Assembly (NCBI GenBank): GCA_009103225.1
Contig: RHPI01002699.1
Coordinates: 58,110-97,262, forward strand
DNA: 39,153 nucleotides
Direction of reading: 5' to 3'
DNA from: Chlorokybus atmophyticus
Taxonomy: Eukaryota; Plantae; Mesostigma and Chlorokybus algae
Below are positions 8,762 through 30,600 of the stretch, in pieces (the first letter of the stretch is position 1; the number at the start of each line of letters is the position of its first letter). The position numbers and the translations under genes are program-made. The notes below the pieces were generated by a model that made no database searches, was not told the DNA's origin, and saw nothing but the letters and a program-made list of their open reading frames with translations.

Positions 8762-11329
8762 ATGGCTGCCGTGGCGGAGACGCACTATTACGAGGTATTG
8801 GGCGTGGCCACCGATGCCACGCCGGAGCAGATCAAGAAGGCTTACTACCTACAGGTACTTCCTTGACACTTTTTGCATGCGTGCTTGGTATGATCGAGTT
8901 GGGATTCAACACACGCATGCATTCAATACAACAACGCAATACAGGCGCGCAAGGTTCACCCGGATAAAAACCCTGGCGACCCGACAGCTGCCCGCAAGTT
9001 CCAGGTCAGCGCCAATGTGCTTTTGTTTTTCATGCACAATATTGTTCCACGTCCAGGATGCAATGGTTGACATGCATTCTGCAGGCATGCATGAATTACG
9101 TTGTTGCTGCTGTTGTTGCTGTCGCTGTTGTCGTTGTTGTTGTTGTTGATGAAATGTGTACACAAATGTAGTTTCGTCGTGTCCCAATCGTTTTTGAAGG
9201 CGGCCTGATATGGTTGTGTGTGCAGGAGCTGGGAGAAGCCTACCAGGTGCGTGCGTGTGTGACTACACGTGTGCATGCGTGTGGGGACGTTGCACCTCAG
9301 TCTCATGCGTGATGCCCCAACAAACCAACCAACCCAACAACCCAACATTACCAACACGCGAACAGGTGCTGTCCGATCCCGCGCAGCGCGACTTGTACAA
9401 CCGCTCCGGTCGTCAGGGCGTGTCGGGGCAGCCCATGATGGACCCCGCCACCGTCTTCGGCATGCTATTCGGCTCGGAACTCTTCGACGATTACGTCGGA
9501 CAGGCAAGCGCGCGCTGAGTCGTGTGTGTGTTCTCGTGTGGCGTATCTGCATCATGCTGGTGGACGCTCATGACTGCATACAACGCACATGCGTTCTTGT
9601 TGTTGTTGCTGTCGTATCAATGCTTCCGTCCTGTGTAGCTTGCTATGGCCAGCCTTGTAACACTTGCTATCGACGCCGGCGGGAGGCAACTCACGCAGCA
9701 AGAGGTGCAAGCCAAGATTAAGGTAAATAGCCATGTGGACTTGTGTGTCAGTTTGTTTGCCCTGTTCTGTCAAATGTCATCTCCCTGTAATGTTGGGTTT
9801 GTTGTTATGCAGGTTGTGCAGCTGGAGAGGCAGGCGAAGCTGGTGCCGCTGTTGCAGAGGCGTCTGCAGCCGTACGTGGAGGGGGATAAGGTGGGGTTTG
9901 TCAATTGGGCCACGAAGGAGGCAGACAGGCTATCCCAAGCATGTGAGTGAACTGTGTGGGAAAATTCTTATGCAACATGTGCACGCGCTTGTCGGTGGCC
10001 ACATGCAAGCAAATGCCTACGCACACAAGAGAACACGCATGCTCGCACGTGCGCACACGCGCATGAACAGGCATGCGTTCACACACATATGCGCACGCAC
10101 ATGTACATGCACACATGTGGCATGTGCGCATCGCCATGTACATTACGCATGATTCTCTGCATTTCATTGGACGTACAGTTGCATGGGCACTTGCAACATG
10201 TCCACCAGTACACGCATGTACCTATGCATGTGGCATCGTCATACACATTGTCACGCACAAGTCTCTGTGTACTTTCTCAACTGATTGTACAGCTACATGA
10301 GCACACATGCATGCATGCTTGCATGTGTGTATCTGAATACGAGTCGCTACCACCACGTGATACATGCGTACCCGCACGTCACAGCTTTCGGCGAGGCGAT
10401 GCTCCACACGATCGGTTACATGTACGAGCGTCGCGCGGCGGCGCACCTGGGCAAGTCCCCCCTCATGCTGGGCGTGCCGTTCGTAGGGGAGTGGGTCAGG
10501 CACAAGGGGCACGCGCTCAAGAGCCAACTGGACGCAGTCAGAGGTGAGAGGCATTTGTGGTGTGTCAGAGTGTGTCTGTGATTCTCTGCGTGCGCTCGTG
10601 AGCATGTGCGTGCGCACGCGTACATCTGTGTGTGTATGTGTCTCTCAGTCAGCACGTGCACAAATGCGCCCGTGTGTGTGTGTGTGTGTGTGTGTGTGTT
10701 GTCGTGCACCGCGCATGTGTGCATGTGCAAACTTGTATGTTTTGAGGGTGCACACACCCGCGAGGGTGCACACATCCACACGAACGCACGTGTATGCGGG
10801 TGCTTTTGTGTGTCTGAGAGCAAAGGCGTGTGCGCGTGCACAAGTACGTTCGTGCATGTGTGTGCGCTATGCTATACGTGCATGCATGTGCACGTGTCGG
10901 TGTTTGCGCTGTGTCGCATAGATTTGTGATATCAATCGACCTCGTTCTCCAGGCGCTGTGGACTTGATGGTGATGCAGAAAGAGGCCGAGCGCCAGTTCG
11001 CCGCCGGCAACGTGACCGAGGCCGCTGCCGAGGCCTTCCTGCAGCAGCGCGTCCCCAAGGCATGTCCTCTACGCATCCCCCCACTCACACCCACTCTCAC
11101 CCTCTGACTCTCCTCCTCCTCCTCCTCTCAGGTGATGAACTCCCTGTGGCAAATCAACGTGGTGGACGTGGAGCAGACCCTGACCTCCGTCGTCGACGCG
11201 CTGCTGGGGGACCGAACCGCCCCGAAAGCCACCACGACCGCGAGGGCCAAGGCGCTGCAGAAGATGGGGAGGGTGTTCCAGGGGGCGAAACCGAAGTACC
11301 AGAGGGCGACGAGGTGGGTGGGTGGATGG

Positions 11330-11380
<51 letters not shown>

Positions 11381-12161
11381 CATGCGCGAGCGCGTGCGCG
11401 ATCAATGAGTGTGCGTGTATGCACAGTTGAAGCTGTCCGTTCGTGCTTCCTCCGATGGTTGTTTGTCATTCTTGCATTGCAGTTTGAGATCAGAGGTCCC
11501 GCTCGGTGCTGGCCTGGGAGCCGCAGCAACGTCGCCGCAGCAGGCAGCGGCGGGCCCTGCTCCCCAACCAGCTTCTGCCCCTCGGGTAAGCACAAGTGTG
11601 GACTCACTCTGCCGTTTGCATAGCATCACATCGGGGGCTAACTTGGGTGCGCACACATATATGCACACTTGCGCGCTTGCGCACACACGCACACGCACGT
11701 ACACACGCGCATGTGCTCGCGCTTATTGCCAGTCGGTTCTTTTGCAGTGATCCCAGACAGCCTGCCTCACACACGTGCCCACACTTTCCTGTGTGCAGCA
11801 ACCGTACCCAACACAACAAGTCCACCCACAAGGCCACACCAACCCATACCCTACATACCCCACACCCCAACCCCACTCCCAACCCTCCCCCCACGGATAC
11901 GCCCAACCCTACGTCCCACACCCTCTTCACCCCACTCCTCCTCCAACACAACAACAGTACCAACAACAGCAACGCGGCTCTTCCCCGGCCGGTCCCGTGC
12001 CCGTCCCGCTGTCGGACGTGCCGGACTTCGAGCAGATGAGTGCGGCTGATCTGAGGAGTTACTTGAAGGCGAGAGGCGTGGATGTGGCGAAGGTGGGGGG
12101 AGATGATAAGGGGGAGATGGCGAGGAGAGCGAGGGAGGTGTACTTTGCGGGAAGGCGGTGA
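8762..12161 (+). CDS. DnaJ co-chaperone with DnaJ-X domain (plant ATJ10 / yeast Caj1-Djp1 type), 11 exons, about 479 aa
   Basis: Exons 8762-8854, 8945-9004, 9226-9246, 9366-9503, 9639-9722, 9813-9942, 10385-10543, 10953-11059, 11132-11313, 11483-11585, 11799-12161 join in frame (1440 nt). J-domain: YYEVLGV...[18 protein letters not shown] (HPD motif)...[14 protein letters not shown]. Then [26 protein letters not shown] and DnaJ-X motifs [51 protein letters not shown]. Two donors are GC (9504, 11060). Confidence 0.9.
11332..11378. repeat. (GT)n microsatellite in DnaJ intron 9
   Basis: Uninterrupted GT dinucleotide run; one of many CA/TG tracts in the introns of this window. Confidence 0.9.
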
Positions 12162-13017
12162 TGGGGATGCGAGTGGATGTGGGTGTGGGTGTGTGTAGAT
12201 GTGGTAGCGTGCGTGTGCGTGTGCGTGGACTTTGTGGTACTGTTGGTTAGTGAGGGCGTGTCTGCGTGCTCGATTATTTGCCTGGTCTTGTGTCCATGTA
12301 CATGGTTTGATGCGCAAGGACGTTGCACGTAAAGGGACACAGCGCAGGCACAAGCTTGCCAGCGTGTGTTTTGCGTTTGACCACATACGAAATGCTTGGC
12401 TTCCGCGAGTTAAAACCGCGTGGTGAAGTCACTAATGTCAATGTGATGAACTGTTAGCAAACGTGCATGCTGCGCTGATGCATGTCAGTAAAGACATTCA
12501 CCGCGAGGACAGGTTCTGATGTTACATAGTGACTGCATGGGTGGGTTACGCACTCAAACCAATCAATCTCCCTTTGCATACATTACTTCGCAGACTACAC
12601 CAGCAGTCACAACCATATCTGAATAACAATCATGGTATGTGAAAAATGAGTCAGCCCCTGCATTTCAGTATGATGAATATACTACTCCTGTCAGCAACTG
12701 ATGGAGGTATGGACCAGATCGGTGAGTTGATGAGTGATGAGGAGGCCAACCCAACCCAGCCCAGGCCAGGGCAGGCCCACTGGACAGACTGCTCATCCCG
12801 ACAACAGCTCTCACCACGTTGAATCCTGCGCATGTGCCGCCACCGCCACCGCCACCGCCACCGCCACCGCCGTCGCCGTCGCCGCCCACGCCCGCAACAC
12901 GATTTCTAACAACAACAACAACAGCGGCAAGAGCAACGCCAGTATCTTGATGACTCAGGTGGCGGCGGCGATGGCGTTGAGCATGTGTCTAGGGAGGTAA
13001 GAAGGAGGCCCTCAAGC

Positions 13018-16000
13018 ATGTGGGTGCGTGTGGGGGCGCTGGTGTTCGCCGCCGCCGCCGCTGCCCTCGCATCCCGCCGGCGAGCAGCTGCAGAACGCAA
13101 GCACAGGGAGCAGGAGGAGCAGGAGCGGGAGGAGCAGGAGGAGAAGGAGAAGGAGCAGAGGGAGAGGGAGGAGAAGGACAGAGAGTGGGAGAGGGAGAAG
13201 GATGAGGAGAGGGTGAAGCAGGAGGAAGAGGAGGAGAAGAACAGGCTTTATCAGTACCTTTCTTCTTTGCTTCCTCCGCCTCTGTCTCCTCCTGGTCCTC
13301 CCCGTTTGCCTCCTCAGGTGCGTGGTGTGTGCATAGTGCCTTTACACCACTGAGCATGCCCATGAATATGTATGATATGCAGCATGATGATGTTGTTGCT
13401 GATGATGATCATCACCATCATCTGGACATGCATCGAGCCTGTTTCTGCATTTTCCGTACAACCAGGCCTTGCGCTGCAAGTCAATGACCCACACCACCTG
13501 AACTAACTGAACTGAACTGATCTGAAGTGAACTGAACTGAACTACCGAAAAAGAGCTGATGGATACTGTGCTCCTCTGTGTGATTGTGTCATTCTCTCAC
13601 TGTGATTGTGTGCACGTGTATGTGTGTCTGCCTGCCTCTCTGGCAGACAACCGACACAAAACCAACTTCCCCACCTGTTCCACCCCCTATCCCGCAACCC
13701 CTCACCCCTCCTTACACTCTCCTCCCTCCCTCTCCTTCTCCACCTCCTCGCCATCCTTCTCCCCCTCCTCTTCATCCTGCTTCTCCACCACCCCGCCCAC
13801 AACCTTCTCCTCCTCTTCATCTTTCTTCTCCTCCTCCTCTTCCATCCCTTCCTTTTTCTCCTCTTCCATCTCTCCCATCTCTTCCTCCTCTCCTCCCGCC
13901 CGAACAACAGCTCTCATTCCTCCAACGGGACCCCAAACCTCATCACAACAACAACAATCACAGTAACAACCACCACACCCCACCACAACAACAACTACAA
14001 CAATCACCACCACAGTTGCGGTTCTTCAACGATGAGCAGGAAGTGTCTGGGCCGTTCTCACCTCCACCCGAGCCTGAAACTAGCTCGAGTTTGCAGCCAA
14101 AGCAGTTGACTTTTGATGCAAGGTGTGATGAGATTAGTAGTATTGGTTTGCTCTGTGTGTTGTTGTGTGAGCATGTGTTGAACAACAGCATGTTTGCAGT
14201 AACCACTGTTTGGACAACAACGAGAATTTCTCGCCCGATGGTCGCTTTTTGGTGTACGACACGCGGCCGGACGACGCGCACATTGCCAATTGCACAACCA
14301 TAGAGCAAGTTGAGATCGCCACGCAGAAGGTACATGGCGATGGTGTGTGTCCTTCTGGTTTACAATACACAACATGCTCTCACACACGCGCATGCACTTA
14401 CGCAGGCACGCACGCATGCATGCAGGCACGCACGCACACACACGCGCACACATACACAGAGGCACACGCAGACAGACATTTACGCACACACACACACATA
14501 CACACATACACACACTCACAGCTTCTTCTCTCATTCTGCAGATTACCATCCTGTACAGAGCTCCCAACCCCGTCCCCGACGCCGGCCCCGGTGTCGGTGC
14601 CGTATCTTACCACCCGATAGACAACAAGGTACACTGATCTTATCTCTCTCTCTCTCTCTTCATCTCTGTCTCATCAACTGACTGTCACTGCCTGCGCAGA
14701 TTGTGTTCATACACGGCCCGAACGTCACGGGCCGAGGAGGCACGCGATACAAGTATGCGAAGACGCACCGCTTCGGGATGCTCATGTCAACAGGTGGGGT
14801 GTGGGTGTGGGTGTGTGGATGTGATACACCAGTGTAGTGATTAACATTCAACAACAGAGACTCCCGGGGTTGCGGCCAACATCGATGCGCGGGACGTGGT
14901 GCCGCCGTTCACGCCAGGCGCGCACCGCGGGGGCACGCACCGCCACGAGTTTGACGGCTCCTCGCAGGTGAGAGTAGGTCGGGTGTTGTGCAAGAGCATA
15001 CGCACGCAGGCGCACATACACACGCACACGCACGTGTGCTTGTGTATGCGCGTGTGCGTGCGCATACATGTGCGCGCGGGCACGCGTGCGCACATGCAGT
15101 CACAAGCACGCACGCATGCTCGTCCCAACACGCACGCGCACCCACATTTACAAGAGTGGGTTTGTCCTCCTGTGCAGTGGATCGGTTGGACGTACAACGA
15201 CGCGTACATGGCGACGCTGGGGCAGGACCTGCGCACCATCGGCGTGACCAAACTAGGACAGCAGGTGCGCGTGCCCGACGGACCGGGAAACAGAAGCGGA
15301 CTAGGCTTCTCAGGTATGCACGCATTGGCATGCACACGCGCTGTATGCTCTACCATATGCGAGTTGTGTATGCGCACAAGCACTCTTACACAAGCGCACA
15401 GAAAGCCCACTCAGATGCGCGCGCGTGCGTGCAGTCGCGCGCACGCACAGATACGCATGCACACACACGCACACAACACCTGTATCACCCTCACAACACG
15501 CATCATCTGCCGCAGCCATCGTTGTCAAAGTGGTGCCCAACCCCGCCCCCGGCTCCGACGAGATCAGGCAAGCAACTGGAACCCCATCCCCCACTCTCTC
15601 TCCTCCTCCCCCTCCCCCTCTCACCCTCTTTGTGTCCCCCCCCCCCCCCCNNNNNNNNNNNNNNNNNNNNNNNNNNNNNNNNNNNNNNNNNNNNNNNNNN
15701 NNNNNNNNNNNNNNNNNNNNNNNNNNNNNNNNNNNNNNNNNNNNNNNNNNNNNNNNNNNNNNNNNNNNNNNNNNNNNNNNNNNNNNNNNNNNNNNNNNNN
15801 NNNCCCCCCCCCCCCCTAAAACAGCGAGGCCACCGACGACAGCTGGGTCGGTTTCAACGGCTACATCGTTGGCGACGCCGACGGCTCCCACTTCCGTCGC
15901 CAGCGCGCCCGCGCCTTCATCGGGTCCACTCGCTCGTCCTCTGGAGACGTGTTGAGGGAGGTGTTCATCGTGGATATCCCAGACGATATCACCAGACCGA

Positions 16001-17487
16001 GCTCGTTGAACGGGCCGATGCAGGGGACCATGGAGGGGATGCCGGGGACGCCGATGGGGTGCAGACAGAGGAGGATCAGCTTCACGGAGGTGGGAGGGGA
16101 TGCAGTGTGTGTGTGTGTGGGGGCGTGTGCGTGTGTGAACGATGCGATGTACCAGTGCTCATGCATAGGGCACACAGTCCACATGCTCATGCACCTGACC
16201 ACAGTGTGCGTGTCAGTGTGTGCGTGCGTGCACGTGCGCATGCGAGTGTATCAAATGCGATGCGGTGTGTAGGTAGGCATACGCCTATGCATTTTCGTAG
16301 CATTGTGAATGTGCGTATGCATGCACGTACTTAGTCTGCGGCTCGTGGACCATTGGGGTGCATAAATGTACGCGTCTGCATTTCTTTTGCAGTTGTTTGT
16401 TCAACCATGATGTGTCTAACCAAGCTGCCTGTTCCCTACGGTTGTGCAGCACAAACCATTCCCGGGGTGCAGAGGGATTGTCCGGTCGCACCCCAAAGGC
16501 CACTGGGTCTCATTCCTGGCAAGGTGTGTATGTGTGTACGTACCTGTACAGTCAATCCCATGCAGCATGAATGCATGTGTGTGCTCGTGTGCGCAACCTC
16601 GAGCAAGCCTGAAGCGTGTGCATGCTCTGATTCGAGCGCGTGCGCAGATCCGACGATGATGGGACCTGGCAGGTGTTTCTGGTCCGGCCTCAGCCCGGCA
16701 TGTGGACACCCCACCAGTTGTCTCATGTACCAGGCACGTCCTTGCTTTGTCATGTTGTGAAGGCTCAATTCATGCCCCGTTACCTGCGCTCATGTTGCCT
16801 TGCATCACAGGTGGACTGCTTCATGCACCAAGGTGGCTCCCATCAGGGAAAGCAGTTATAGCCATAGACACAGAGGCAAGCTTTGTTTTTCATCACGCAC
16901 ACATGCATGTGCGCGCGCGCACACATATGCACACACAGATACACACACACACACATATAGTGCATTGCATTGTAAATACACACTGGCATGCACGAGTGCA
17001 CATACCCTGTTCTGTACACACGCACACACACCAACTTACGCGCGCGTGCACTCACGTCCACGCACAAGTGCACGAATGCCCTGTACACGGCAGCTGTACA
17101 CGCGTGCGCGCACACACTGTCATACATACACACACTTATGTCCCCCTGTCTCTCCCTATCCAGCACCGCCTCGTCTCCATCTGCGCCGTCCGTTCCAGCC
17201 CCCGCTACGGTCTCCACTCCCCCCTCACTCCCTCCTCTCCTTCCTCCTCCCCCCCCTACGCCCACGTCATCTCCCGCGACGGCTCCATGATCGCCTACAA
17301 CAAGGACGTGGCGGGAGTGGACGGCGTGAGGAGGAGGCAGATATACATCGTGCCGTATGACGAAGGGGAGGACGGGTTGCCGAACAACAGTGTTGGTGCG
17401 GAGGAGGAGGGGGAGTATGTGCATAGGGAGGAGAGTCAGAGTGGGATTGGGTTTAGTCCCTCTGTGTCTGAGTTTGAGTTTAGTTGA
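13018..17487 (+). CDS. yidR: YidR/DUF3748-like (TolB-like beta-propeller) protein with N-terminal hydrophobic anchor, E/K/R-rich segment and Pro-rich linker; 13 exons, about 732 aa
   Basis: Exons 13018-13317, 13647-14122, 14200-14329, 14542-14628, 14700-14793, 14858-14967, 15178-15313, 15516-15567, 15825-16089, 16450-16523, 16648-16733, 16811-16875, 17164-17487 join in frame (2199 nt). The spliced product is collinear with bacterial YidR as I recall it: KQLTFDASNHCLDNNENFSPDGRFLVYDTRP; VFIHGP; DARDVVPPFTPGAHRGGTHRH; WTYNDAYM...DLRTIGV; PNPAPGSDEISEATDDSWVG; EVFIVDIP; RQRRISFT; WQVFLV..QLSH; ISRDGSMIAY. The start codon is uncertain because the frame is open back to 12910 and an upstream exon is possible. 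Confidence 0.85.
13505..13544 (+). repeat. (AACTG)n pentamer tandem repeat in intron 1 of the YidR-like gene
   Basis: AACTG AACTG AACTG ATCTG AAGTG AACTG AACTG AACTA. Confidence 0.8.
15651..15803. other. Assembly gap (Ns) between poly-C runs, inside an intron of the YidR-like gene
   Basis: N run flanked by C homopolymers. The exons on either side join in frame without needing the gap sequence. Confidence 0.95.
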
Positions 17488-19093
17488 GGGAGGGGTGGGG
17501 TGGGGTGTTGTATCACTGTTGTGGGTGTGTGGTGTTGTTGTGTTTGGGGGGTTGTGGGGTTGTGGGTGGGGGTGGGGGGGTGAGTTTGCACTCGATGAGA
17601 ACTTCGAGGATGATGATGGCGAGGGCGAGGATGACGGGGAGGAGGAGGAAGAAGAGGATGATCAGCTGGATGGGGGTGAGACCCATTGCCTGGCCGCAAT
17701 AGTCCACTTCTGCCTCTTCTTGTTCTTGTTGAGCTGCGTGTTGTTGGTCTTCTTGTTGTTGGTGGTCTTGTTGTTGGTCTTGTGGACTCGAACTCTGCAT
17801 GCATGCACGATTATTCTCGCACAAGTTCTGAACAAAAGGTTGGGAGGGCGACCGAGTGCCTCAACCTTTGCTTGTGTGTGTGCCATGCGTACAAAGATGC
17901 ATACGCTCAGGCGCAGTTGTGAACGCAGCTCCGGTACTGCTGCATGCATGCATGAACACCATCTCACAACTTGGCTCAGCAACATTGAAGCAGCATTAGC
18001 GCAGACTGCTACAAGGCTGGGTTATGAGCGTTATATAGCAGCGCTATATAGTCGCACAGAATGGGATGCAATTGCAAGACCAAAAAAATAAGAGCACACG
18101 CAAGCATGAGTGAAGACCATCGCACGTTACCTCCTGCATCTGCCCGTTTTGCTGTGGACTAACTTGCCTCATGGCTGCTGCCCTCAACCTTCCCTCCCTC
18201 TCTTCCTTTCTCTCCTTTTCTCAGAATTGAACCCCCCAGGCCTAGCAGCTCAAGCCCCTACCCATGCATGGCAAAGCGTTTCCCTGTACAAGCGTTTCCC
18301 ACTTTTGACTATGATTTCATTCCTTGAAATCAATGTCAGTCAGTGAGTGAGAAAGCGATGGATAGATAGGTAGATATCCGCGTGCAGTCCATCATGTACA
18401 TCGCCTTCATTGATATCCGCGCGACTTCGCTGATATGATTGATTTTTCTCGGCTCGGCTGAGCTGACACACGAAATCTGTCTGCTGAGGTGGCCGTTAGC
18501 AAGGATCAGGCGGAGGACGAGGCGGCGGAGGAGGAGGAGAGGGGTGAGGCGGGTGGTGGGTGGCGACGGAGGCGAGGGTGCTGCAGCTGTCGGTGGGAGT
18601 AAGGGCGCCGTCGCCGCCGGTGTTGGCATCCGGTATCTGTAGGTGTGCATGTTGGCAGCTGGTTGTTACAACACACTCAATCATTCACTCTTCTACGCAT
18701 GGTGACAGCGCACTTTGCAATGCCACGTACGCTTCTGTGCTGTTGGACTTGGCACTACCAAAGACTCCTTCCCTGTACACGCATGTGCACGCTTGTTTTG
18801 GTCACGTCTCATGCGAGGCGCAGAGAGAGAAAAACTACCTTGGATGAATTGCCATGTGTGGTCTGGTTACTTTTGTTTGCCATGCGGTGGATACACTGAA
18901 ATCAAATCACACGTTCTGCATCTGTGTGTTTGTGTTTGTCAACACATACACAAGCACATCTCTTCAAACACTACACCCACACATCTACCATACCAGGTCA
19001 CACTCGCACCCAACCCGCCCGTCAACCAGAAGAGGCTATCACCATTCGCATCATCACCCTTCTTACCGTCACCGCCGTCTCCTCTCCCTCACC

Positions 19094-24600: not shown

Positions 24601-27600
24601 GTGTATGCACACATGCACGCACGCATGCACGCACACATACACACGCGGGTGTAGCACACGACACACATTAGGCGTTACCTATGCAGTCGTAGTGGCATGG
24701 CCGGTGTTGTCCCCGCCTCCCCCACCTCCCCACATCGTTCCTCCCCTTCTTCCTCATCATCCTCAAGGCTCTCAACCTGGTGTGGTTGTCCCGCCATCTC
24801 CACTCCCCCCTTCCCCAACTCCTCATCAGCCTCCTCCCGCTCTGTGACCTCTGCATTGCCTCCCTCCACTCTCTTCTCCCCCTTCTCTCCCTTCCCTCCC
24901 TTGTCTTCCTTCTCTCCCTTGTCTCTCTCTTCTCTCCTTGCAGTCAACAAGGCCTCGTTTACAGCCAACTCGAACCCCGCCAAGTCCACGTGCGCATCCG
25001 GCGGGGGGTCCACGTCGCTAGTCTCGTCCCGATTGGCAGTGGTGGCGCTAGTGATAGCAGTGAAGGCGTCGAGGTGAGGGGCAGGGTCTGATGTGACAAG
25101 GGGTGGGGGTGGAAGTGGTATGGCGCGTGCAGTGACCTGTGAAGCAAGTGCAAGCGATACGTGTGTTGTGCATGCCGTACGGCGATGCGCGCACATCCAC
25201 ACACGTGGGCGTGCATACCAACATGCACACGGGCACGCGCACGCGCACACTCATGTCTGCCCCACCTGCAGGAAGTAAGGTGGTGCCTCTGCCCCGCACA
25301 TCATCCGTCTCCAGTACCTTCTCCATCCCTCTTTCACCCTCACAACCCACCCACCACCCCTCTCTCCACCCTTCTCTCCAACAACACTCGCGATGTCGTC
25401 CGGCCACTTGCCGCGGTGCGCCTTGGTCGCAGCGTGAACGAGGACGGAGATGTAAACAGCAACCAAGGGGAAGGCCTGTGAGAGAGTGGGGGTGGGTGGG
25501 TGGGGGTGGGGGTAGGTGGGTGGGTGTGTTGGCCCTTACTTGGCGTACGAAGGTGTGGGGGCCGAGGTAGCGTAAGCCCAATGCGCGCAGAGTGCGCTGG
25601 GATGAGTCCACAACCCAACCGGCTGTTGCGGGCACCTGAACAAGTGTGTGTGTGTGTGCGTGTGTGTGCGTGTGTGTGCGCGTGAAAGTGTGCAGTCATT
25701 GGCAGAATAAATGTATACGTGTGTGACGACGACCCACGTACCTGCCATATGTATAGCACCAATAGGTACACTTCTGCGCAACGCAGCACGAAGCGCCAAT
25801 ACTTCCTGAACCAAAGTGACACACAGAATGACAATGGCGGCTGACAACTGCCAGGACGCATTGCACACGCAACTTTCACACGCGCCAGCGCACGTGCGCA
25901 CACACATACACTTCTTTCTGTTTCTCGCAATTGCGAGGATGCGCACGCGTACGCACACGCAAGCTCACACACACACTCCCATGCGCACACGCCCTCTCCC
26001 ACCCACCTTCGTGGCGGCGGTCCCGGGCACGCGATCGCGTACATCAACGCTGTCGCCAGTAGCACCATTGCCATGATCGAGAAGTCCCACAGGAACAATG
26101 TTACAAACAGCACGTAGCAGAGGGCGTCTGTTCTCCTAACAGCGTGGTGGAGGAGAACACTTCTCATAGAAGAAGCTTTGCCCTCTTTGTGAGGAGAGAG
26201 TGTGTCTGAGTCGTGGGTTTTGTTGTTGGATTTGCTCAGGAGTGTAGTTAGCTTGAGCTTTGCTCTGATACAAGCAGTGCGCGAAATGGATATCAAGCGC
26301 TGAAGACGTGTCGTGGTCGGTTTCAGGTCTTTTTCTCTGCTAGGTGATGTTGACATCGCTATCGAGTCTGCGATATCACCTTTATCCTTCGTATGCAGGA
26401 CCGCTATATCCTTCTTCTCACCGATATCCCCATCATCCCACTTGGCCTCCTCCTTCGATATCTCCTCGGATTGCTCCAGCATCTCTCCCACAGATGCCTT
26501 TCCCCCTCCTTCCAATATCGACGACGGCGTGTGAAACTCCATGCTCGCATCCACGCAATCCTCACCCTCTACGACGCAGCACAGCGGGTTGAGTTTGACG
26601 TCGTACGCCCTGGCGATATCCACTGGGACGAAGTGGCTAGGGCTGAGTGGCGTGAGCGGCTGCGCGTGAGGGGAGGAGGAAGGAGAGGAGGTGAGAGGGA
26701 GGAGAGCGGGTCGGCGACCGGATGGGAACCACATCTTGGGGTCGGAGGGACGGAGAGTTGAAGCGTTGGGACTGGAGGAAGAGGGACTTAGAAGTTGTAA
26801 ACCCTGCTTCAAGCGCTCCACCTGTATGACACTCGTATGCGAGGATGTTGTACACGCGTACGCGCACATGCACGCGCACATGCTTCGACGCACGCACAAT
26901 GTCATACCAAGCTAATCTCATGTCTGGGTACGCACACATGCGTGCGTGTGAGTTCGTGGATGCATGTGCATATGTGCATGAACACGCGTGCCCGTGTGTT
27001 TGCCGTGAGCACGTATGCTAGTGTGTGCATACAGCAGCGTACTGAGACAGCTGCAACACTCACCTGGCGTTTGCGTTCCCGCTGTTTGCGCTGGAACCCT
27101 TCAAGCTTCTCGAGCTGTCTGTCCTTCCACGCGACGCGCTCGGCCCGGGCTCTCTCCCTCGCACGCACCCTCCCTTCCCTCACACAGGCCATCTGAACCC
27201 AACAAGCAAGGGTTTTACCACGAAACTCATACTTACAACCACCACACACACACACACACACACACACCACTGCGTGGTATTCGGGTGTTGCCAAAGCTGC
27301 GTGCAGGAGTCCCGCGAGGGCCCATATGGCCATGTCGGGGAGGGACGCCTCGCCCGTGACACGCGTGAGACCGATGAGGGCGCAGGCATCGCATCCCCTT
27401 CTGGAGGACAGATATGGCATCTGTGTGTGGAGTGAGTGTGTATGTGAGTGTGTGTGTGTGTGAGTTGTGTCATCTGCACACATACACATGAGAAGTGCTC
27501 TCGCACCTGCCATAGGGCAAAGAGACAGAGCACCGCGTAATTGTACACGCGCAGGTAGACAATCATCTTAATGTTGCTGTTGTTGTTGTTGTTGTGTTCA

Positions 27601-30600
27601 ATGTGGGCCCTGTGGCGGAAGAGTGCGAGTGCGAAGATGAGGTACCCGCCGTGCACGAGGTCGTACTCGGAGGTCCCGATTGCAAAGATGAGCAGTGTGA
27701 CAATGCTGAAAGCGTGTCGATACAGCGTGTATCTGAGCTTGTCGAGTAGAGTCCACATGTTGCTCTTCGCGTGGTCGAATCCCGTCCATGGCACGACAGG
27801 GCCAATGTCCACATCAATATTGGCTTTCTTCTTCTCCCAGTTTGTGTATGTTGTGACTGTGGCGAAGAGGGCCGCAAAGAGGGTCCAAAGAGGGTGAGAG
27901 GAATCCACTTCGGAGCCAAACCAGCAGCGCTTGCAGTAGCGAGAGTCGTTGTTGCTACCGTCCTGGCATTGTGAGCAGGTGAGAAAAGAGCTCGGCTTCT
28001 CAATGGCTGATGGTTTTCCCAGCCAAGCCACGTATTCCGCTACCAGAACCGTAGCGATGACTAAAGTGGCTATCCTCCAGTGCTTGCGCAACCGGCTTTT
28101 GGGTAGCCACATGCAGAGGCCCAGCAGAGCCAGAAACAGAAGGGAGATTGCTGTGCGAAGGATGAAAGCTACTATCAAGTAAATGCACATGCAGGTCTCC
28201 AGTCCCAAAGTCTCCCAGAAGCGCTGCAGAAGGGTGACAGCTTTGGCTACAAGACCCGCGAACTGTCGTTTCAGCAGGGAGCCAGCAGCAAAGCGTCCCT
28301 CCAATCTCACGGAATGAATGGCTTCTGTCTTCCATTTGCTGCTGGCTTGCTGCAGCACGCAAATGGCTATCAAACAAGCTTCTGGCCTTAGCCCTCGCTC
28401 CATGCCATGGTAGCCGGACTCGAAGTGGCTGAAGCCGATCCAGCGAAGCCAATTTGGATCAGCTCCTGCCAGATGCCTCTCCACGGTCTGATACAAGTAA
28501 CCAGCTACCAGCATCTGGACAGAAGCAAGAAGCAAGAAGACTCTTCCCGGCACCTGGGAGCGCTTTGGAAGCCGAAACAACACCAGTAGAGCCACTATCA
28601 CACCCAGCCACACCAACCCAAACACGTTTGCTCCGGAAGCCATGTTCCCAAATGCAGCAAAATACACCGCTTTGTCCACATGCAGAGCCACAATCCTCTT
28701 TATTATCACCACCAAGTGTTTCTCCTTCACCTTTCTCACACTCTTGTTGTCTCCTCTCTGGCGATACAGCTCCAACACAACAAATAGCAGAGCCAGGAGC
28801 CACACTTGTCTCTCCTCCTCGCTGTGCGCGAACCCAACGTACTCTTCACGCCGGTCGCCCATGCGCGGGAAGAGTGAGGGAAAGGCTGTGAACACGTATG
28901 ATGCAGAGAAGGACGCGAGCGTGTAGAGGGTGAGAGGGTGCAAGAAGAAGGGTGAGAATAGGACGGAGAGGAGGAGAAGGAGCAGGAGACCCACGCCGAG
29001 GTAGCTCGGGGAGACGGAGTAGACAACCTGAAGGGGAATGTGTGTGTGTTGTTGTGAGCGTACAGAGTGTGTGTGTGTGTGTGGTTGTGAGAGTTTACCT
29101 GTAGTGTGGCGAAGAAGCAAATGTACATGCCAATGCTTCGGGTCGTGTGCTGGAGTGCTGCCCACACTTTGGCAAGAGTTGACGCGCGCCATTGTGAAAG
29201 CACTCGGCTCGCTGTGACATGTATGTAATATGAAGACACACGCATGCATGCACGCATGCATGCGTATGTCTTCATACACATATACAAGCACGAACGCAGG
29301 CACAGACGCGCGCACGTATAAACATGCAGGCACACACATGTGCGCACAGGTTAGAAAGGTGTTGCAGATGAGAGTATCAGCTGCCATCATACCTGCTGGC
29401 GAGTCCGTCTTGATTGCCTGTTAAACGTGGAGAGTGAGTCTGTATGGTGTGAATAGAGGTTGTGGTGGCTTGAGTGACCACAGGCTGACACTTACTCTGT
29501 GAGACAATAAGAGGAGAAGAGCCCATATGCCAGCAGTCTCCGCCCACTCGTTCTGCCATAGCCCTGTCCAAAAAAGACATGAACTGGTGTGCACACACAC
29601 ACACCAGATGCAAGCGAGCACCACACGTGCACATAGGGGTACACGCGCGCGCGCGCGCGCACAAGCGCATGCGCACACGCTCACACGCACGCGCCACATC
29701 ACACCACCAAAACTCAACTCACCAACAAGCTCAAGTGTGTCTTTATGCTCCTGGCTCCTCACCCTCTCTCTCACCCCTCTCAGTTCAAACACCCACACGC
29801 TCGCCGCATGCAGCGCGCACAACACGTGCAACGGCCTCATCACCCACACGCTTGTGATTGGCACACGTACGAGGACAACAAACGCCACAACTGGCAGGGA
29901 GAAAGAGAGTGAGTTTGGTTCATTATACACCAACATATAACAACTTGCAACATATAACACAAAGCTTCTTACCATATGTGGAGTGAAGGACATCATATGT
30001 GGTGAGGCCCACGATGCACAGTGCGAGTGCGGTTAAAGGCCGCGCGTGGACGGTTAGCGCTAATCGGGCCGCCGTTAGCAGGCGGATGATAAAGTTTCCC
30101 TCGCTGACATCGACGGTAGTAAGCTTGATGTCGGTCAAGGATACGGGCGTTTGGCCCAATTTGGGTGACAGGTTCTCCGTAACAACTTCGGTCTCGGTGT
30201 TTGGTGTCTTGGTATGGAGGGGAGTGGTTCTCCTCTGTCGCGGTGATGTTGGGAAAATTGATATGGACGCCTCGTCAAACACTCTCACACTCTGCTCACA
30301 TTTCTCAACCCTCCCATGTGAGCACACCTGCACATCACCCATGTTGCACCTGCGCATGCACACACGCACACACACGCATGCATGCACGCACGCACATGCA
30401 CATTTGCACGGGCATGTATGTTTACGTGCACACTGATACTCACAAGTACGAATGTGAAGCCAACTCCTACCCACGCTACCCAGCTCTCTCCTTTCACCCA
30501 CTCCGTGTGCACATCCCACACTCGCACACCACAGGCTGCGCATGCGTGGGCGATGATGTACAACTTGATGACTCTCTGCGGAATGTTGTTTGAGGCTGAT

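Follow-up and report, generated by a model that had tools for sequence, protein, structure and literature searches.

A spliced gene for a predicted DUF3748/YidR-type beta-propeller, of probable bacterial origin, in the nuclear genome of Chlorokybus atmophyticus

Background

How does a gene whose product reads like a bacterial protein come to lie, interrupted by a dozen introns, in the genome of a green alga? The question is raised by a locus of Chlorokybus atmophyticus, which is among the streptophyte algae most distant from land plants. The gene occupies positions 13018-17487 (forward strand) of the stretch of 39,153 nucleotides analysed here (the window), and the C-terminal part of its product resembles the bacterial protein YidR, a member of the family DUF3748. 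To our knowledge, no structure has been solved and no biochemical activity is known for the DUF3748/YidR family. Our search of the literature on DUF3748 found no treatment of eukaryotic members, and no report of a transfer of DUF3748 into an alga was found.

Here we report an analysis of the structure, relatives, distribution and predicted fold of this gene. Very probably it is a gene of the DUF3748/YidR type, for a predicted beta-propeller, that was donated by a bacterium and is now a fully adapted nuclear gene of C. atmophyticus.

Exon structure, transcripts and the assembly gap

Reading of the sequence yields 13 exons, all on the forward strand, that together make up 2199 nt (732 codons plus stop). 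All 12 introns were confirmed, with 0 mismatches, by spliced transcript contigs from two independent studies, one represented by run X1 (contig of 2487 nt) and the other by run X2 (2172 nt). Ten of the joints are read directly in these contigs, and introns 4 and 5 follow from the coordinates of a contiguous X2 record. The spliced, multi-exon gene of the preliminary description is therefore borne out by transcripts.

Exon 1 (13018..13317), upstream of which the X1 contig begins at 13005, carries the start codon. It encodes a hydrophobic, Ala-rich N-terminus (approximately residues 5-18), next to which come RRR and a stretch rich in Glu, Lys and Arg; the exon is without bacterial counterpart, and a Pfam search with it returned weak low-complexity matches only. 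Exon 2 (13647..14122) is Pro-rich, with many runs of SPPP type, and then Asn/His/Gln-rich. No Pfam family was matched by exon 2, and bacterial homology starts in its final eight or so codons (KQLTFDA), aligned to residues 22-26 of P0002, a protein from an uncultured bacterium.

The predicted propeller begins in exon 3 (14200..14329; NHCLDNNENFSPDG..., aligned to P0002 residues 31-69) and continues through exon 4 (14542..14628), with 22 of 25 residues identical to P0002 residues 74-98, and exon 5 (14700..14793), aligned to residues 103-128. Exon 6 (14858..14967) encodes the core of the Pfam DUF3748 signature (ARD...PGAxRGGTHRHE), and exon 7 (15178..15313; WIGWTYND...DLRTIGV) covers positions 80-116 of the DUF3748 profile. 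Exon 8 (15516..15567) measures 52 nt and encodes IVVKVVPNPAPGSDEI, 12 of whose 16 residues are identical to P0002, while exon 9 (15825..16089) is the longest propeller exon (DSWVG...RARAFIG...VDIP...QRRISFT). Exons 10 (16450..16523; PGCRGIVRSHPKG) and 11 (16648..16733; SDDDGTWQVFLV...) are delimited by the transcript contigs and the alignment to P0002. Exon 12 (16811..16875; GLLHAPRWLPSGKAVIAIDTE) shares 13 of 21 residues with P0002 residues 365-385, and exon 13 (17164..17487) encodes the last propeller blade, a 33-aa tail found in the alga only and the stop codon TGA (17485-87). Also in exon 13 is the C-terminal sequence YDEGEDGLPNN, common to the algal protein and its closest bacterial relatives.

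Three of the 12 introns are of the GC-AG type. Intron 8 (15568..15824, donor GCAAGC) has its joint at 15564->15822, which, given three ambiguous letters, equals 15567/15825. Intron 11 (16734..16810, donor GCACGT; joint 16730->16808, four ambiguous letters) and intron 12 (16876..17163, donor GCAAGC; joint 16873->17162, two ambiguous letters) were each seen in X1, X2 and X4.

An assembly gap within the gene, together with the bacterial character of the family, might suggest contamination or an assembly error that fused bacterial DNA to a scaffold of the alga. The gap, a run of N at 15651-15803 with poly-C on its flanks, sits within intron 8. Both contigs pass from exon 7 through exactly 52 nt, exon 8, into exon 9, and across the exon 8/9 junction PGSDEI-R-S-EATDDSWVG matches PGSDEISRADGDSWVG of the bacterial relatives residue for residue; since contigs and bacterial alignment alike join exon 8 to exon 9, no exon is concealed by the gap, and the reading frame runs on without a break. 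Against contamination, moreover, the 12 spliceosomal introns cut the region of homology exactly at the codon level, a DnaJ-X gene of eukaryotic type lies just upstream, and the top bacterial identity among the matches listed is just 54%. The spliced transcripts refute contamination or mis-assembly, which we reject and to which we assign next to no probability. Because of its 12 spliceosomal introns, the spliced transcripts of two studies and the DnaJ-X gene upstream, the algal gene is physically integrated in the host genome and expressed, in agreement with the earlier claim of a domesticated bacterial gene as opposed to a contaminant.

The 3' end and the public gene model

At the 3' end (17482..18088, forward strand) the X1 contig, the X2 contig and the public model differ from one another. 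The X2 contig runs past the stop codon at 17485, up to 17500. The X1 contig omits 106 nt, with the joint lying within a 7-nt direct repeat (TGAGTTT), and beyond this joint it continues as an in-frame open reading frame that is first acidic and then hydrophobic. The public model instead has a splice at 17464-17584 and two extra exons.

This public model, Chlat1 3556 (EukProt Chlorokybus atmophyticus / JGI; P0001 below), is 100% identical to our reading over exon 9. It is without 41 conserved residues: exon 8 is shortened, the end of exon 11 is missing and exon 12 is absent, with the loss of the conserved PGSDEI motif and of one entire exon. We consider the model wrong in these three places because GC-AG introns were disallowed, and such introns are probably under-called more widely in the annotation of the Chlorokybus genome.

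Membership of the DUF3748/YidR family

Exon 6 alone (36 aa) matched Pfam PF12566 (DUF3748) at 41.4 bits (E 1.7e-10) and P0001 did so at 102.6 bits (E 2e-29), the gathering cut-off of this family being 27 bits; an NCBIfam search of the exons gave no match. The stretch of about 480 aa encoded by exons 3-13 runs collinear with bacterial DUF3748/YidR proteins, and the exons match P0002 residues 31-456 in consecutive order. Compared exon by exon with P0002 residues 22-456, 240 of 480 residues are identical, and identity reaches 54% across the propeller. The match is far beyond chance, and the algal protein counts as a full-length DUF3748 member.

Conservation extends to individual residues. Across 71 bacterial sequences, 20 columns of the family are invariant; the alga keeps 19 of them and has S for T in the remaining one. 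Where conservation reaches at least 90% (64 columns), the public model keeps 53, and the residues of exons 8 and 12 add four (57/64). It had been proposed, from the sequence of the window, that the C-terminal 480 or so residues follow YidR and that the gene has been retained under selection; the collinearity, the PF12566 match and the kept invariant columns uphold the first proposal and are in line with the second. The motifs quoted in the preliminary description were all found (NNENFSPDG in exon 3, GGTHRHEF in exon 6, RARAFIG in exon 9, GIVRS in exon 10).

Escherichia coli YidR (b3689; DUF3748 domain-containing galacturonate catabolism protein) has in common with the algal protein the PF12566 signature, collinearity over the whole propeller and the motifs RGGTHxH, TYND, LRxxGV, PGSDEI, GWVG, AFIG and QRRLTFT, and in a tblastn search it was collinear along exons 3-10. 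The two are 32% identical. E. coli YidR has neither signal peptide nor introns, whereas the algal protein belongs to a different subfamily, one that bears signal peptides, and carries a 260-aa N-terminal extension, the 33-aa tail and 12 introns. The closest relatives among the matches listed, at 51-54% identity, are proteins of uncultured bacteria (P0002, P0137/P0254 [MFH1742514.1], P0138, P0139 and L003). The clade of P0002 has the C-terminal motif YDEGxDGLP and end-to-end collinearity in common with the alga; unlike the algal gene, its members are bacterial, encode about 455 aa with an N-terminal signal peptide, are without introns and lie in compact, operon-style genomes.

Distribution and phylogenetic position

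With exon 9 as query (the exons being searched singly), a search of 5.8 billion proteins gave, among the matches listed, a single one of eukaryotic source, the public model of the algal gene itself; the database did not contain the spliced Chlorokybus products that the X1 and X2 contigs predict. A word search with P0001:250-690 gave 615 matches, the best 120 of which were bacterial or metagenomic save P0001, with 48% identity for the next best. None of the seven matches of a fragment search was eukaryotic, and the 30 clusters checked by name were all bacterial or metagenomic except the gene's own (P0001). An Atlas feature search returned only DUF3748 clusters labelled 100% bacterial, and the family is present at no fewer than 558 GTDB species loci.

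In the careful maximum-likelihood tree (60 rows), the alga groups with six sequences of uncultured bacteria (UFBoot 100, SH-aLRT 97). A quick tree of 90 rows placed it within successive clades of 4, 14 and 27 rows (SH-aLRT 97, 96 and 97, respectively). The algal sequence used was P0001:250-690, which is without the 41 residues mentioned above, and the tree is unrooted. In the trees, the clades adjoining the alga and its sister group belong to Omnitrophota and Planctomycetota. The sister clade itself carries no phylum label; on the contig of its closest member, a neighbouring dapA gene is 54-58% identical to entries labelled 'bacterium', Omnitrophota and Hinthialibacter. As the algal branch is long (1.12, versus a median of 0.38), the exact sister may reflect long-branch attraction. 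The gene is nested inside bacterial diversity and, by the nearest labelled clades, is not of cyanobacterial or alphaproteobacterial descent. Since a single eukaryotic sequence is known, the direction of transfer is argued from parsimony, with hundreds of bacterial species set against one alga.

These data bear on two other origins. Many bacterial-looking nuclear genes of algae stem from endosymbiosis, and the source could have been the ancestor of the plastid (cyanobacterial) or of the mitochondrion (alphaproteobacterial). One GTDB locus (L056) is in fact labelled Cyanobium, but its range of matches is the same as that of Emticicia loci, so this metagenome-assembled locus is probably a binning error. 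With uncultured bacteria, Omnitrophota and Planctomycetota as the nearest clades, and no other plastid-bearing eukaryote among the matches listed, we regard an endosymbiotic origin as highly improbable.

The other is vertical inheritance, in which an early eukaryote or the archaeplastid ancestor already had DUF3748, with loss nearly everywhere but in the Chlorokybus line. The long algal branch would fit such a history, distant eukaryotic members could exist beyond the best 120 of the 615 matches, and the Pfam text for DUF3748, in naming both bacteria and eukaryotes, would count in its favour. Very many independent losses would be needed, however, and the algal protein lies several well-supported nodes deep within bacteria, has its YDEGxDGLP motif in common with a single small clade of bacteria and is accompanied by no other eukaryote-sourced protein among 127 listed matches and 30 named clusters. 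Vertical inheritance is accordingly very unlikely.

Transfer from a bacterium to the alga, followed by the gain of introns and of the 260-aa N-terminal extension, is well supported, and the horizontal origin proposed in the preliminary description is upheld by the tree and by the want of any other eukaryote-sourced match among those listed. Its remark that some details look closer to Bacteroidetes-type versions than to E. coli is numerically right, identity to such sequences being 39-42%, versus 32% to E. coli, but the closest relatives among the matches listed (51-54%) form the uncultured clade beside Omnitrophota and Planctomycetota, not beside Bacteroidota. The donor may have stood in or near this clade. 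After integration, the gene would have gained its 12 introns, three of them GC-AG, and the bacterial signal peptide would have been exchanged for the eukaryotic extension of about 260 aa, in which a hydrophobic stretch, the putative leader or anchor, is followed by a charged Glu/Lys/Arg run and a Pro-rich linker of SPPP type. The long branch and the 12 introns suggest that the transfer is old.

Predicted fold and possible function

The AlphaFold model of the bacterial relative P0002, standing in for the algal protein, has a pLDDT of 95.6 and is all-beta, with some 26-28 strands. Its best full-length structural match in a VIA wide search was the propeller of an S9 peptidase (Z 29.1). The oligogalacturonate lyase 3C5M of Vibrio parahaemolyticus (family PL22) superposed over the whole chain with Z 27.2, rmsd 3.4 and 329 aligned residues, just 2-4 Z units above generic propellers, the WD40 background being Z 23-25. 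Foldseek against the PDB was less discriminating than the VIA search: it gave generic propellers only, at TM of about 0.5, and ranked 3C5M 43rd. When E. coli YidR or a 16-sequence profile was compared with PDB sequences, nothing but generic blades of TolB, PD40 and S9-peptidase type came back, and PL22 yielded no sequence match in Pfam (Pectate_lyase22) or the PDB, even at E 10. We reject membership in PL22: the likeness to 3C5M is one of predicted fold, alongside a galacturonate theme supplied by yidR, and comes with no detectable sequence relationship to the family of the algal gene.

Growth of an E. coli yidR mutant is impaired on galacturonate and gluconate (PMC5293155), and a bacterial GH31-DUF3748 fusion exists. 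A census of 58 flanking genes at 30 diverse bacterial loci revealed no conserved partner, only scattered carbohydrate enzymes, including glycoside hydrolases, a sulfatase, a PfkB kinase and a KDPG aldolase. A DHDPS-family gene beside the closest bacterial relatives, considered as a hint of a sugar-acid aldolase, was dropped, its relatives all being annotated as housekeeping dapA. In Cytophagales, a conserved gene of 740 aa, without Pfam family, lies upstream of the DUF3748 gene.

We tentatively propose an acidic sugar or oligosaccharide, of uronate type, as the ligand or substrate of the propeller. The invariant residues R122, R141, R153, H157, H159, Y172, D174, R187 and R308 (P0002 numbering) would line its central face as a putative active or binding site. 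Only slightly less likely is a TolB/PD40-type propeller of the same origin that has no catalytic or carbohydrate-related activity and acts as a scaffold or binding module, for example for a wall or membrane partner. In its favour, the sequence matches in the PDB are limited to blades of TolB and S9-peptidase PD40 type, a peptidase propeller domain heads the fold matches and the bacterial neighbours vary, but the dense set of Arg, His, Tyr and Asp residues invariant across distant bacteria resembles a catalytic or small-ligand site, and the sugar-acid phenotype of yidR and the GH31 fusion also speak against it.

Returning to acidic sugars, the N-terminal extension may tether the algal protein to a membrane or to the cell wall. 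The hydrophobic segment could be a signal peptide that is cleaved off, or else a signal anchor that leaves the bulk of the protein cytosolic. More speculatively, and with little probability in our estimation, a periplasmic acidic-sugar propeller of bacteria might have become a secreted enzyme on an extensin-like stalk, acting on the uronic-acid (pectin-like) polymers of the alga's own wall. If this were true, wall remodelling with a captured bacterial gene would represent an early, lineage-specific experiment, and DUF3748, a large family, would gain its first biochemical handle.

Conclusion

Published cases of comparable kind are the bacterial-type ferroxidase LPR1, transferred from bacteria to streptophytes (PMC9168544), XTH, of non-plant origin (PMC8711696), and the plant subtilases (PMC6713707). 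They agree with the gene described here in that a gene of bacterial descent has settled in the nucleus of a streptophyte, where it has introns and is expressed; they differ in having spread through land plants and in having known roles, while Chlorokybus is so far the one eukaryote with DUF3748 among the matches listed. With bacterial transfers into streptophyte algae already known as events, the earlier ranking of this gene as the best candidate for novel biology in the window was too generous.

We regard it as a fairly ordinary but well-supported capture of a bacterial gene, which adds a clean and well-documented case from a streptophyte alga and combines intron gain with a new N-terminal region for targeting and linkage, while the residues typical of the family are retained. 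That the large bacterial DUF3748/YidR family has a eukaryotic member under selection is a further reason to characterise it.

Gene structure and transcript support

Read in its three forward frames, the stretch 13000-17500 yielded a gene (13018-17487, forward strand) that runs from an ATG at 13018 to a TGA at 17485-17487 in 13 exons, with a coding sequence of 2199 nt (732 codons and a stop). Its introns measure 64-360 nt; nine are GT-AG and three GC-AG, the latter being intron 8 (15568-15824), intron 11 (16734-16810) and intron 12 (16876-17163), all on the forward strand. Contigs assembled from four sequencing runs of one organism were placed on 12900-17700. The 2487-nt contig of run X1 (study P1, 2021) and the 2172-nt contig of run X2 (study P2, 2013) match the exons with no mismatches, every intron being spliced out where predicted; ten of the joints are directly listed in the contigs, and introns 4 and 5 are deduced from the X2 contig, whose record coordinates are contiguous there. 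All three GC-AG introns are confirmed by spliced contigs, and a small contig from a third sample, X4, links exons 11, 12 and 13. Although the type of run is only guessed, the X1 and X2 contigs can hardly be anything other than RNA-derived, given that all 12 introns are absent from them. Frame reading and spliced contigs from two studies thus bear out the 13 exons and 12 introns of the preliminary description, and the four motifs it quoted are all found in the gene.

The assembly contains a run of Ns (15651-15803) that lies within intron 8 and is flanked by poly-C tracts. In both the X1 and X2 contigs, exon 7 is followed by exactly 52 nt (exon 8) and then by exon 9, and the exon 8/9 junction matches the bacterial proteins residue by residue; no exon is therefore concealed in the gap, and the reading frame is unbroken.

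The 3' end occurs in three versions. The X2 contig runs past the stop as far as 17500. The X1 contig omits 106 nt, from one copy of the 7-nt direct repeat TGAGTTT to the other, where canonical splice ends are absent; this skip removes the stop codon and keeps the frame, which proceeds into an acidic run and a hydrophobic run of about 30 residues, the open frame ending at 18088. The public protein model has a GT-AG intron at 17464-17584 and two more exons. The propeller is whole in all three.

The upstream neighbour, at about 9200-12900 on the forward strand, is a multi-exon, eukaryote-type DnaJ gene, whose DnaJ-X domain matches Pfam PF14308 at 11108-11620 (E 9e-14). Two long open frames on the reverse strand, of 523 codons (25343-26911) and 746 codons (27183-29420), had no Pfam match at E 0.001.

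Family membership and conservation

The exons were searched singly. Exon 6 by itself matches Pfam DUF3748 (PF12566; E 1.7e-10, 41.4 bits against a cut-off of 27), and the profile carries on into exon 7. In tblastn, E. coli YidR (from NC_000913) is collinear with exons 3-10, and exon-by-exon alignment to P0002, the closest bacterial protein and one from an uncultured bacterium, extends from residue 22 to the end of that protein, with 240 of 480 residues identical overall and 54% identity over the propeller. The alga keeps 19 of the 20 columns that are invariant among 71 bacterial sequences and 57 of the 64 conserved at 90% or more, exons 8 and 12 included, as expected of a working protein under purifying selection.

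Homology begins at KQLTFDA, which corresponds exactly to the start of the bacterial proteins once their signal peptides are removed. The roughly 260 residues encoded by exons 1-2 have no bacterial counterpart and comprise, in order, an Ala-rich hydrophobic segment and, directly behind it, RRR, a Glu/Lys/Arg-rich run and a Pro-rich stretch with many SPPP-type motifs. The leader could be a signal peptide cleaved at an ALA-S site, which together with the SPPP stretch would suggest a wall-tethered secreted protein; alternatively, it could be a signal anchor, the protein staying in the cytosol.

Errors in the public protein model

Exon 9 was compared exhaustively, by HMMER, with 1.84 billion representatives. 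The top match, at 100% identity, was a 747-aa protein, EukProt Chlorokybus atmophyticus P002839 (JGI Chlat1 3556); about 100 further proteins came after it, all at 57% identity or less. This public model is mis-spliced, departing from the transcript-supported gene at each of the three GC-AG introns, and also differs from it at the 3' end. Missing from it are 14 residues in the region of the conserved PGSDEI motif, along with about 27 residues spanning the end of exon 11 and the whole of exon 12, in total 41 conserved residues. GC-AG introns may be under-annotated across the Chlorokybus genome.

Possible function

All that is established for the DUF3748 family is that E. coli mutants in yidR are impaired in growth on galacturonate and gluconate (PMC5293155). 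The fold was predicted for P0002 in place of the algal protein, from an alignment of 72 sequences; the AlphaFold model is confident and all-beta (pLDDT 95.6, pTM 0.92). Foldseek matched it to generic propellers only. In an exhaustive structural scan, the best match was an S9 peptidase propeller (Z 29.1); the PL22 oligogalacturonate lyase 3C5M came next (Z 27.2 over 329 residues), and unrelated WD40 propellers reached Z of about 23-25. The likeness of the lyase to the predicted P0002 fold extends over the whole chain, although we found no sequence-level link between DUF3748 and PL22.

Bacterial DUF3748 genes have scattered glycoside hydrolases, a sulfatase, PfkB kinases and KDPG aldolase as neighbours, among which no conserved partner gene was found. 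Our best guess, a tentative one, is a propeller whose invariant Arg, His, Tyr and Asp residues bind or cleave an acidic sugar or oligosaccharide; a propeller that binds without catalysis is almost equally probable.

Several bacterial arrangements were also observed. In the bacterial protein P0009/P0132 (JGI metagenome, 1246 aa), a DUF3748 propeller forms the C-terminal part of a fusion with a complete GH31 glycosidase. P0027 (672 aa) carries a permuted or duplicated DUF3748 and ends in a sorting domain of the Bacteroidota secretion type. In Cytophagales, a protein of about 740 aa without a Pfam family is regularly encoded 5' of the DUF3748 gene (loci L013, L023, L034, L036, L040, L073, L075-L077 and L082); at L013 and L023, the two at which the scan extended to the downstream gene, that gene encodes a protein of about 810 aa with a GH67N/GH20b-like N-terminal domain. 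This Cytophagales group may be an uncharacterised polysaccharide-utilisation cluster.

Probable bacterial origin of the gene

In a word search with the propeller of the public model (P0001:250-690), 615 relatives were found among 5.8 billion proteins. The best 120 of these were all bacterial or metagenomic save the gene itself, with no other eukaryote, and the runner-up to the gene's own model stood at 48% identity. None of seven matches in a fragment-sized search was eukaryotic, and 30 clusters checked by name were bacterial or unnamed metagenomic, except the gene's own. Scanning one genome per bacterial species gave at least 558 DUF3748 loci in Planctomycetota, Omnitrophota, Bacteroidota, Fidelibacterota, KSB1 and others. 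One locus labelled as a Cyanobium sp. NIES-981 MAG (L056) may lie on a mis-binned contig, since its match range and identity equal those of the Emticicia loci L045 and L050.

The same P0001 segment represented the alga in the trees. In a quick maximum-likelihood tree (90 rows, LG+C20, rooted on E. coli YidR), it fell within a four-row clade (SH-aLRT 97) nested in a 14-row clade that included Omnitrophota and Planctomycetota (96), itself nested in a 27-row clade (97). A careful tree of 60 rows grouped it with six uncultured-bacterium sequences (UFBoot 100, SH-aLRT 97) as their sister (97/87), on a terminal branch of 1.12 against a median of 0.38. The C-terminal motif YDEGxDGLP is common to the alga and this closest clade, whose proteins are encoded on ordinary compact bacterial contigs, one of 2.56 Mb (ERZ21862645:ctg38511l); GCA_043820745.1 and the MAG of locus L003 also belong to the sister clade. 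The dapA adjoining P0002 is similar to 'bacterium', Omnitrophota and Hinthialibacter entries, at no more than 54-58%. The suggested closeness to Bacteroidetes-type proteins rather than to E. coli stands for identity (39-42% to Bacteroidota members, 32% to E. coli YidR) but not for closest kinship, which lies with the uncultured-bacterium clade (P0002 at 54%).

The proposed horizontal transfer from bacteria is supported by the nesting of the alga in bacterial clades, no other eukaryote appearing among the matches listed. With a single eukaryotic sequence, the direction rests on parsimony, and bacterium-to-alga is by far the simplest reading, hundreds of bacterial species standing against one alga. 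The length of the branch, the presence of 12 introns and the added N-terminal region suggest a transfer that is not recent. Bacterial genes fixed in streptophyte algae are already known, and this gene is a further instance of such an event.
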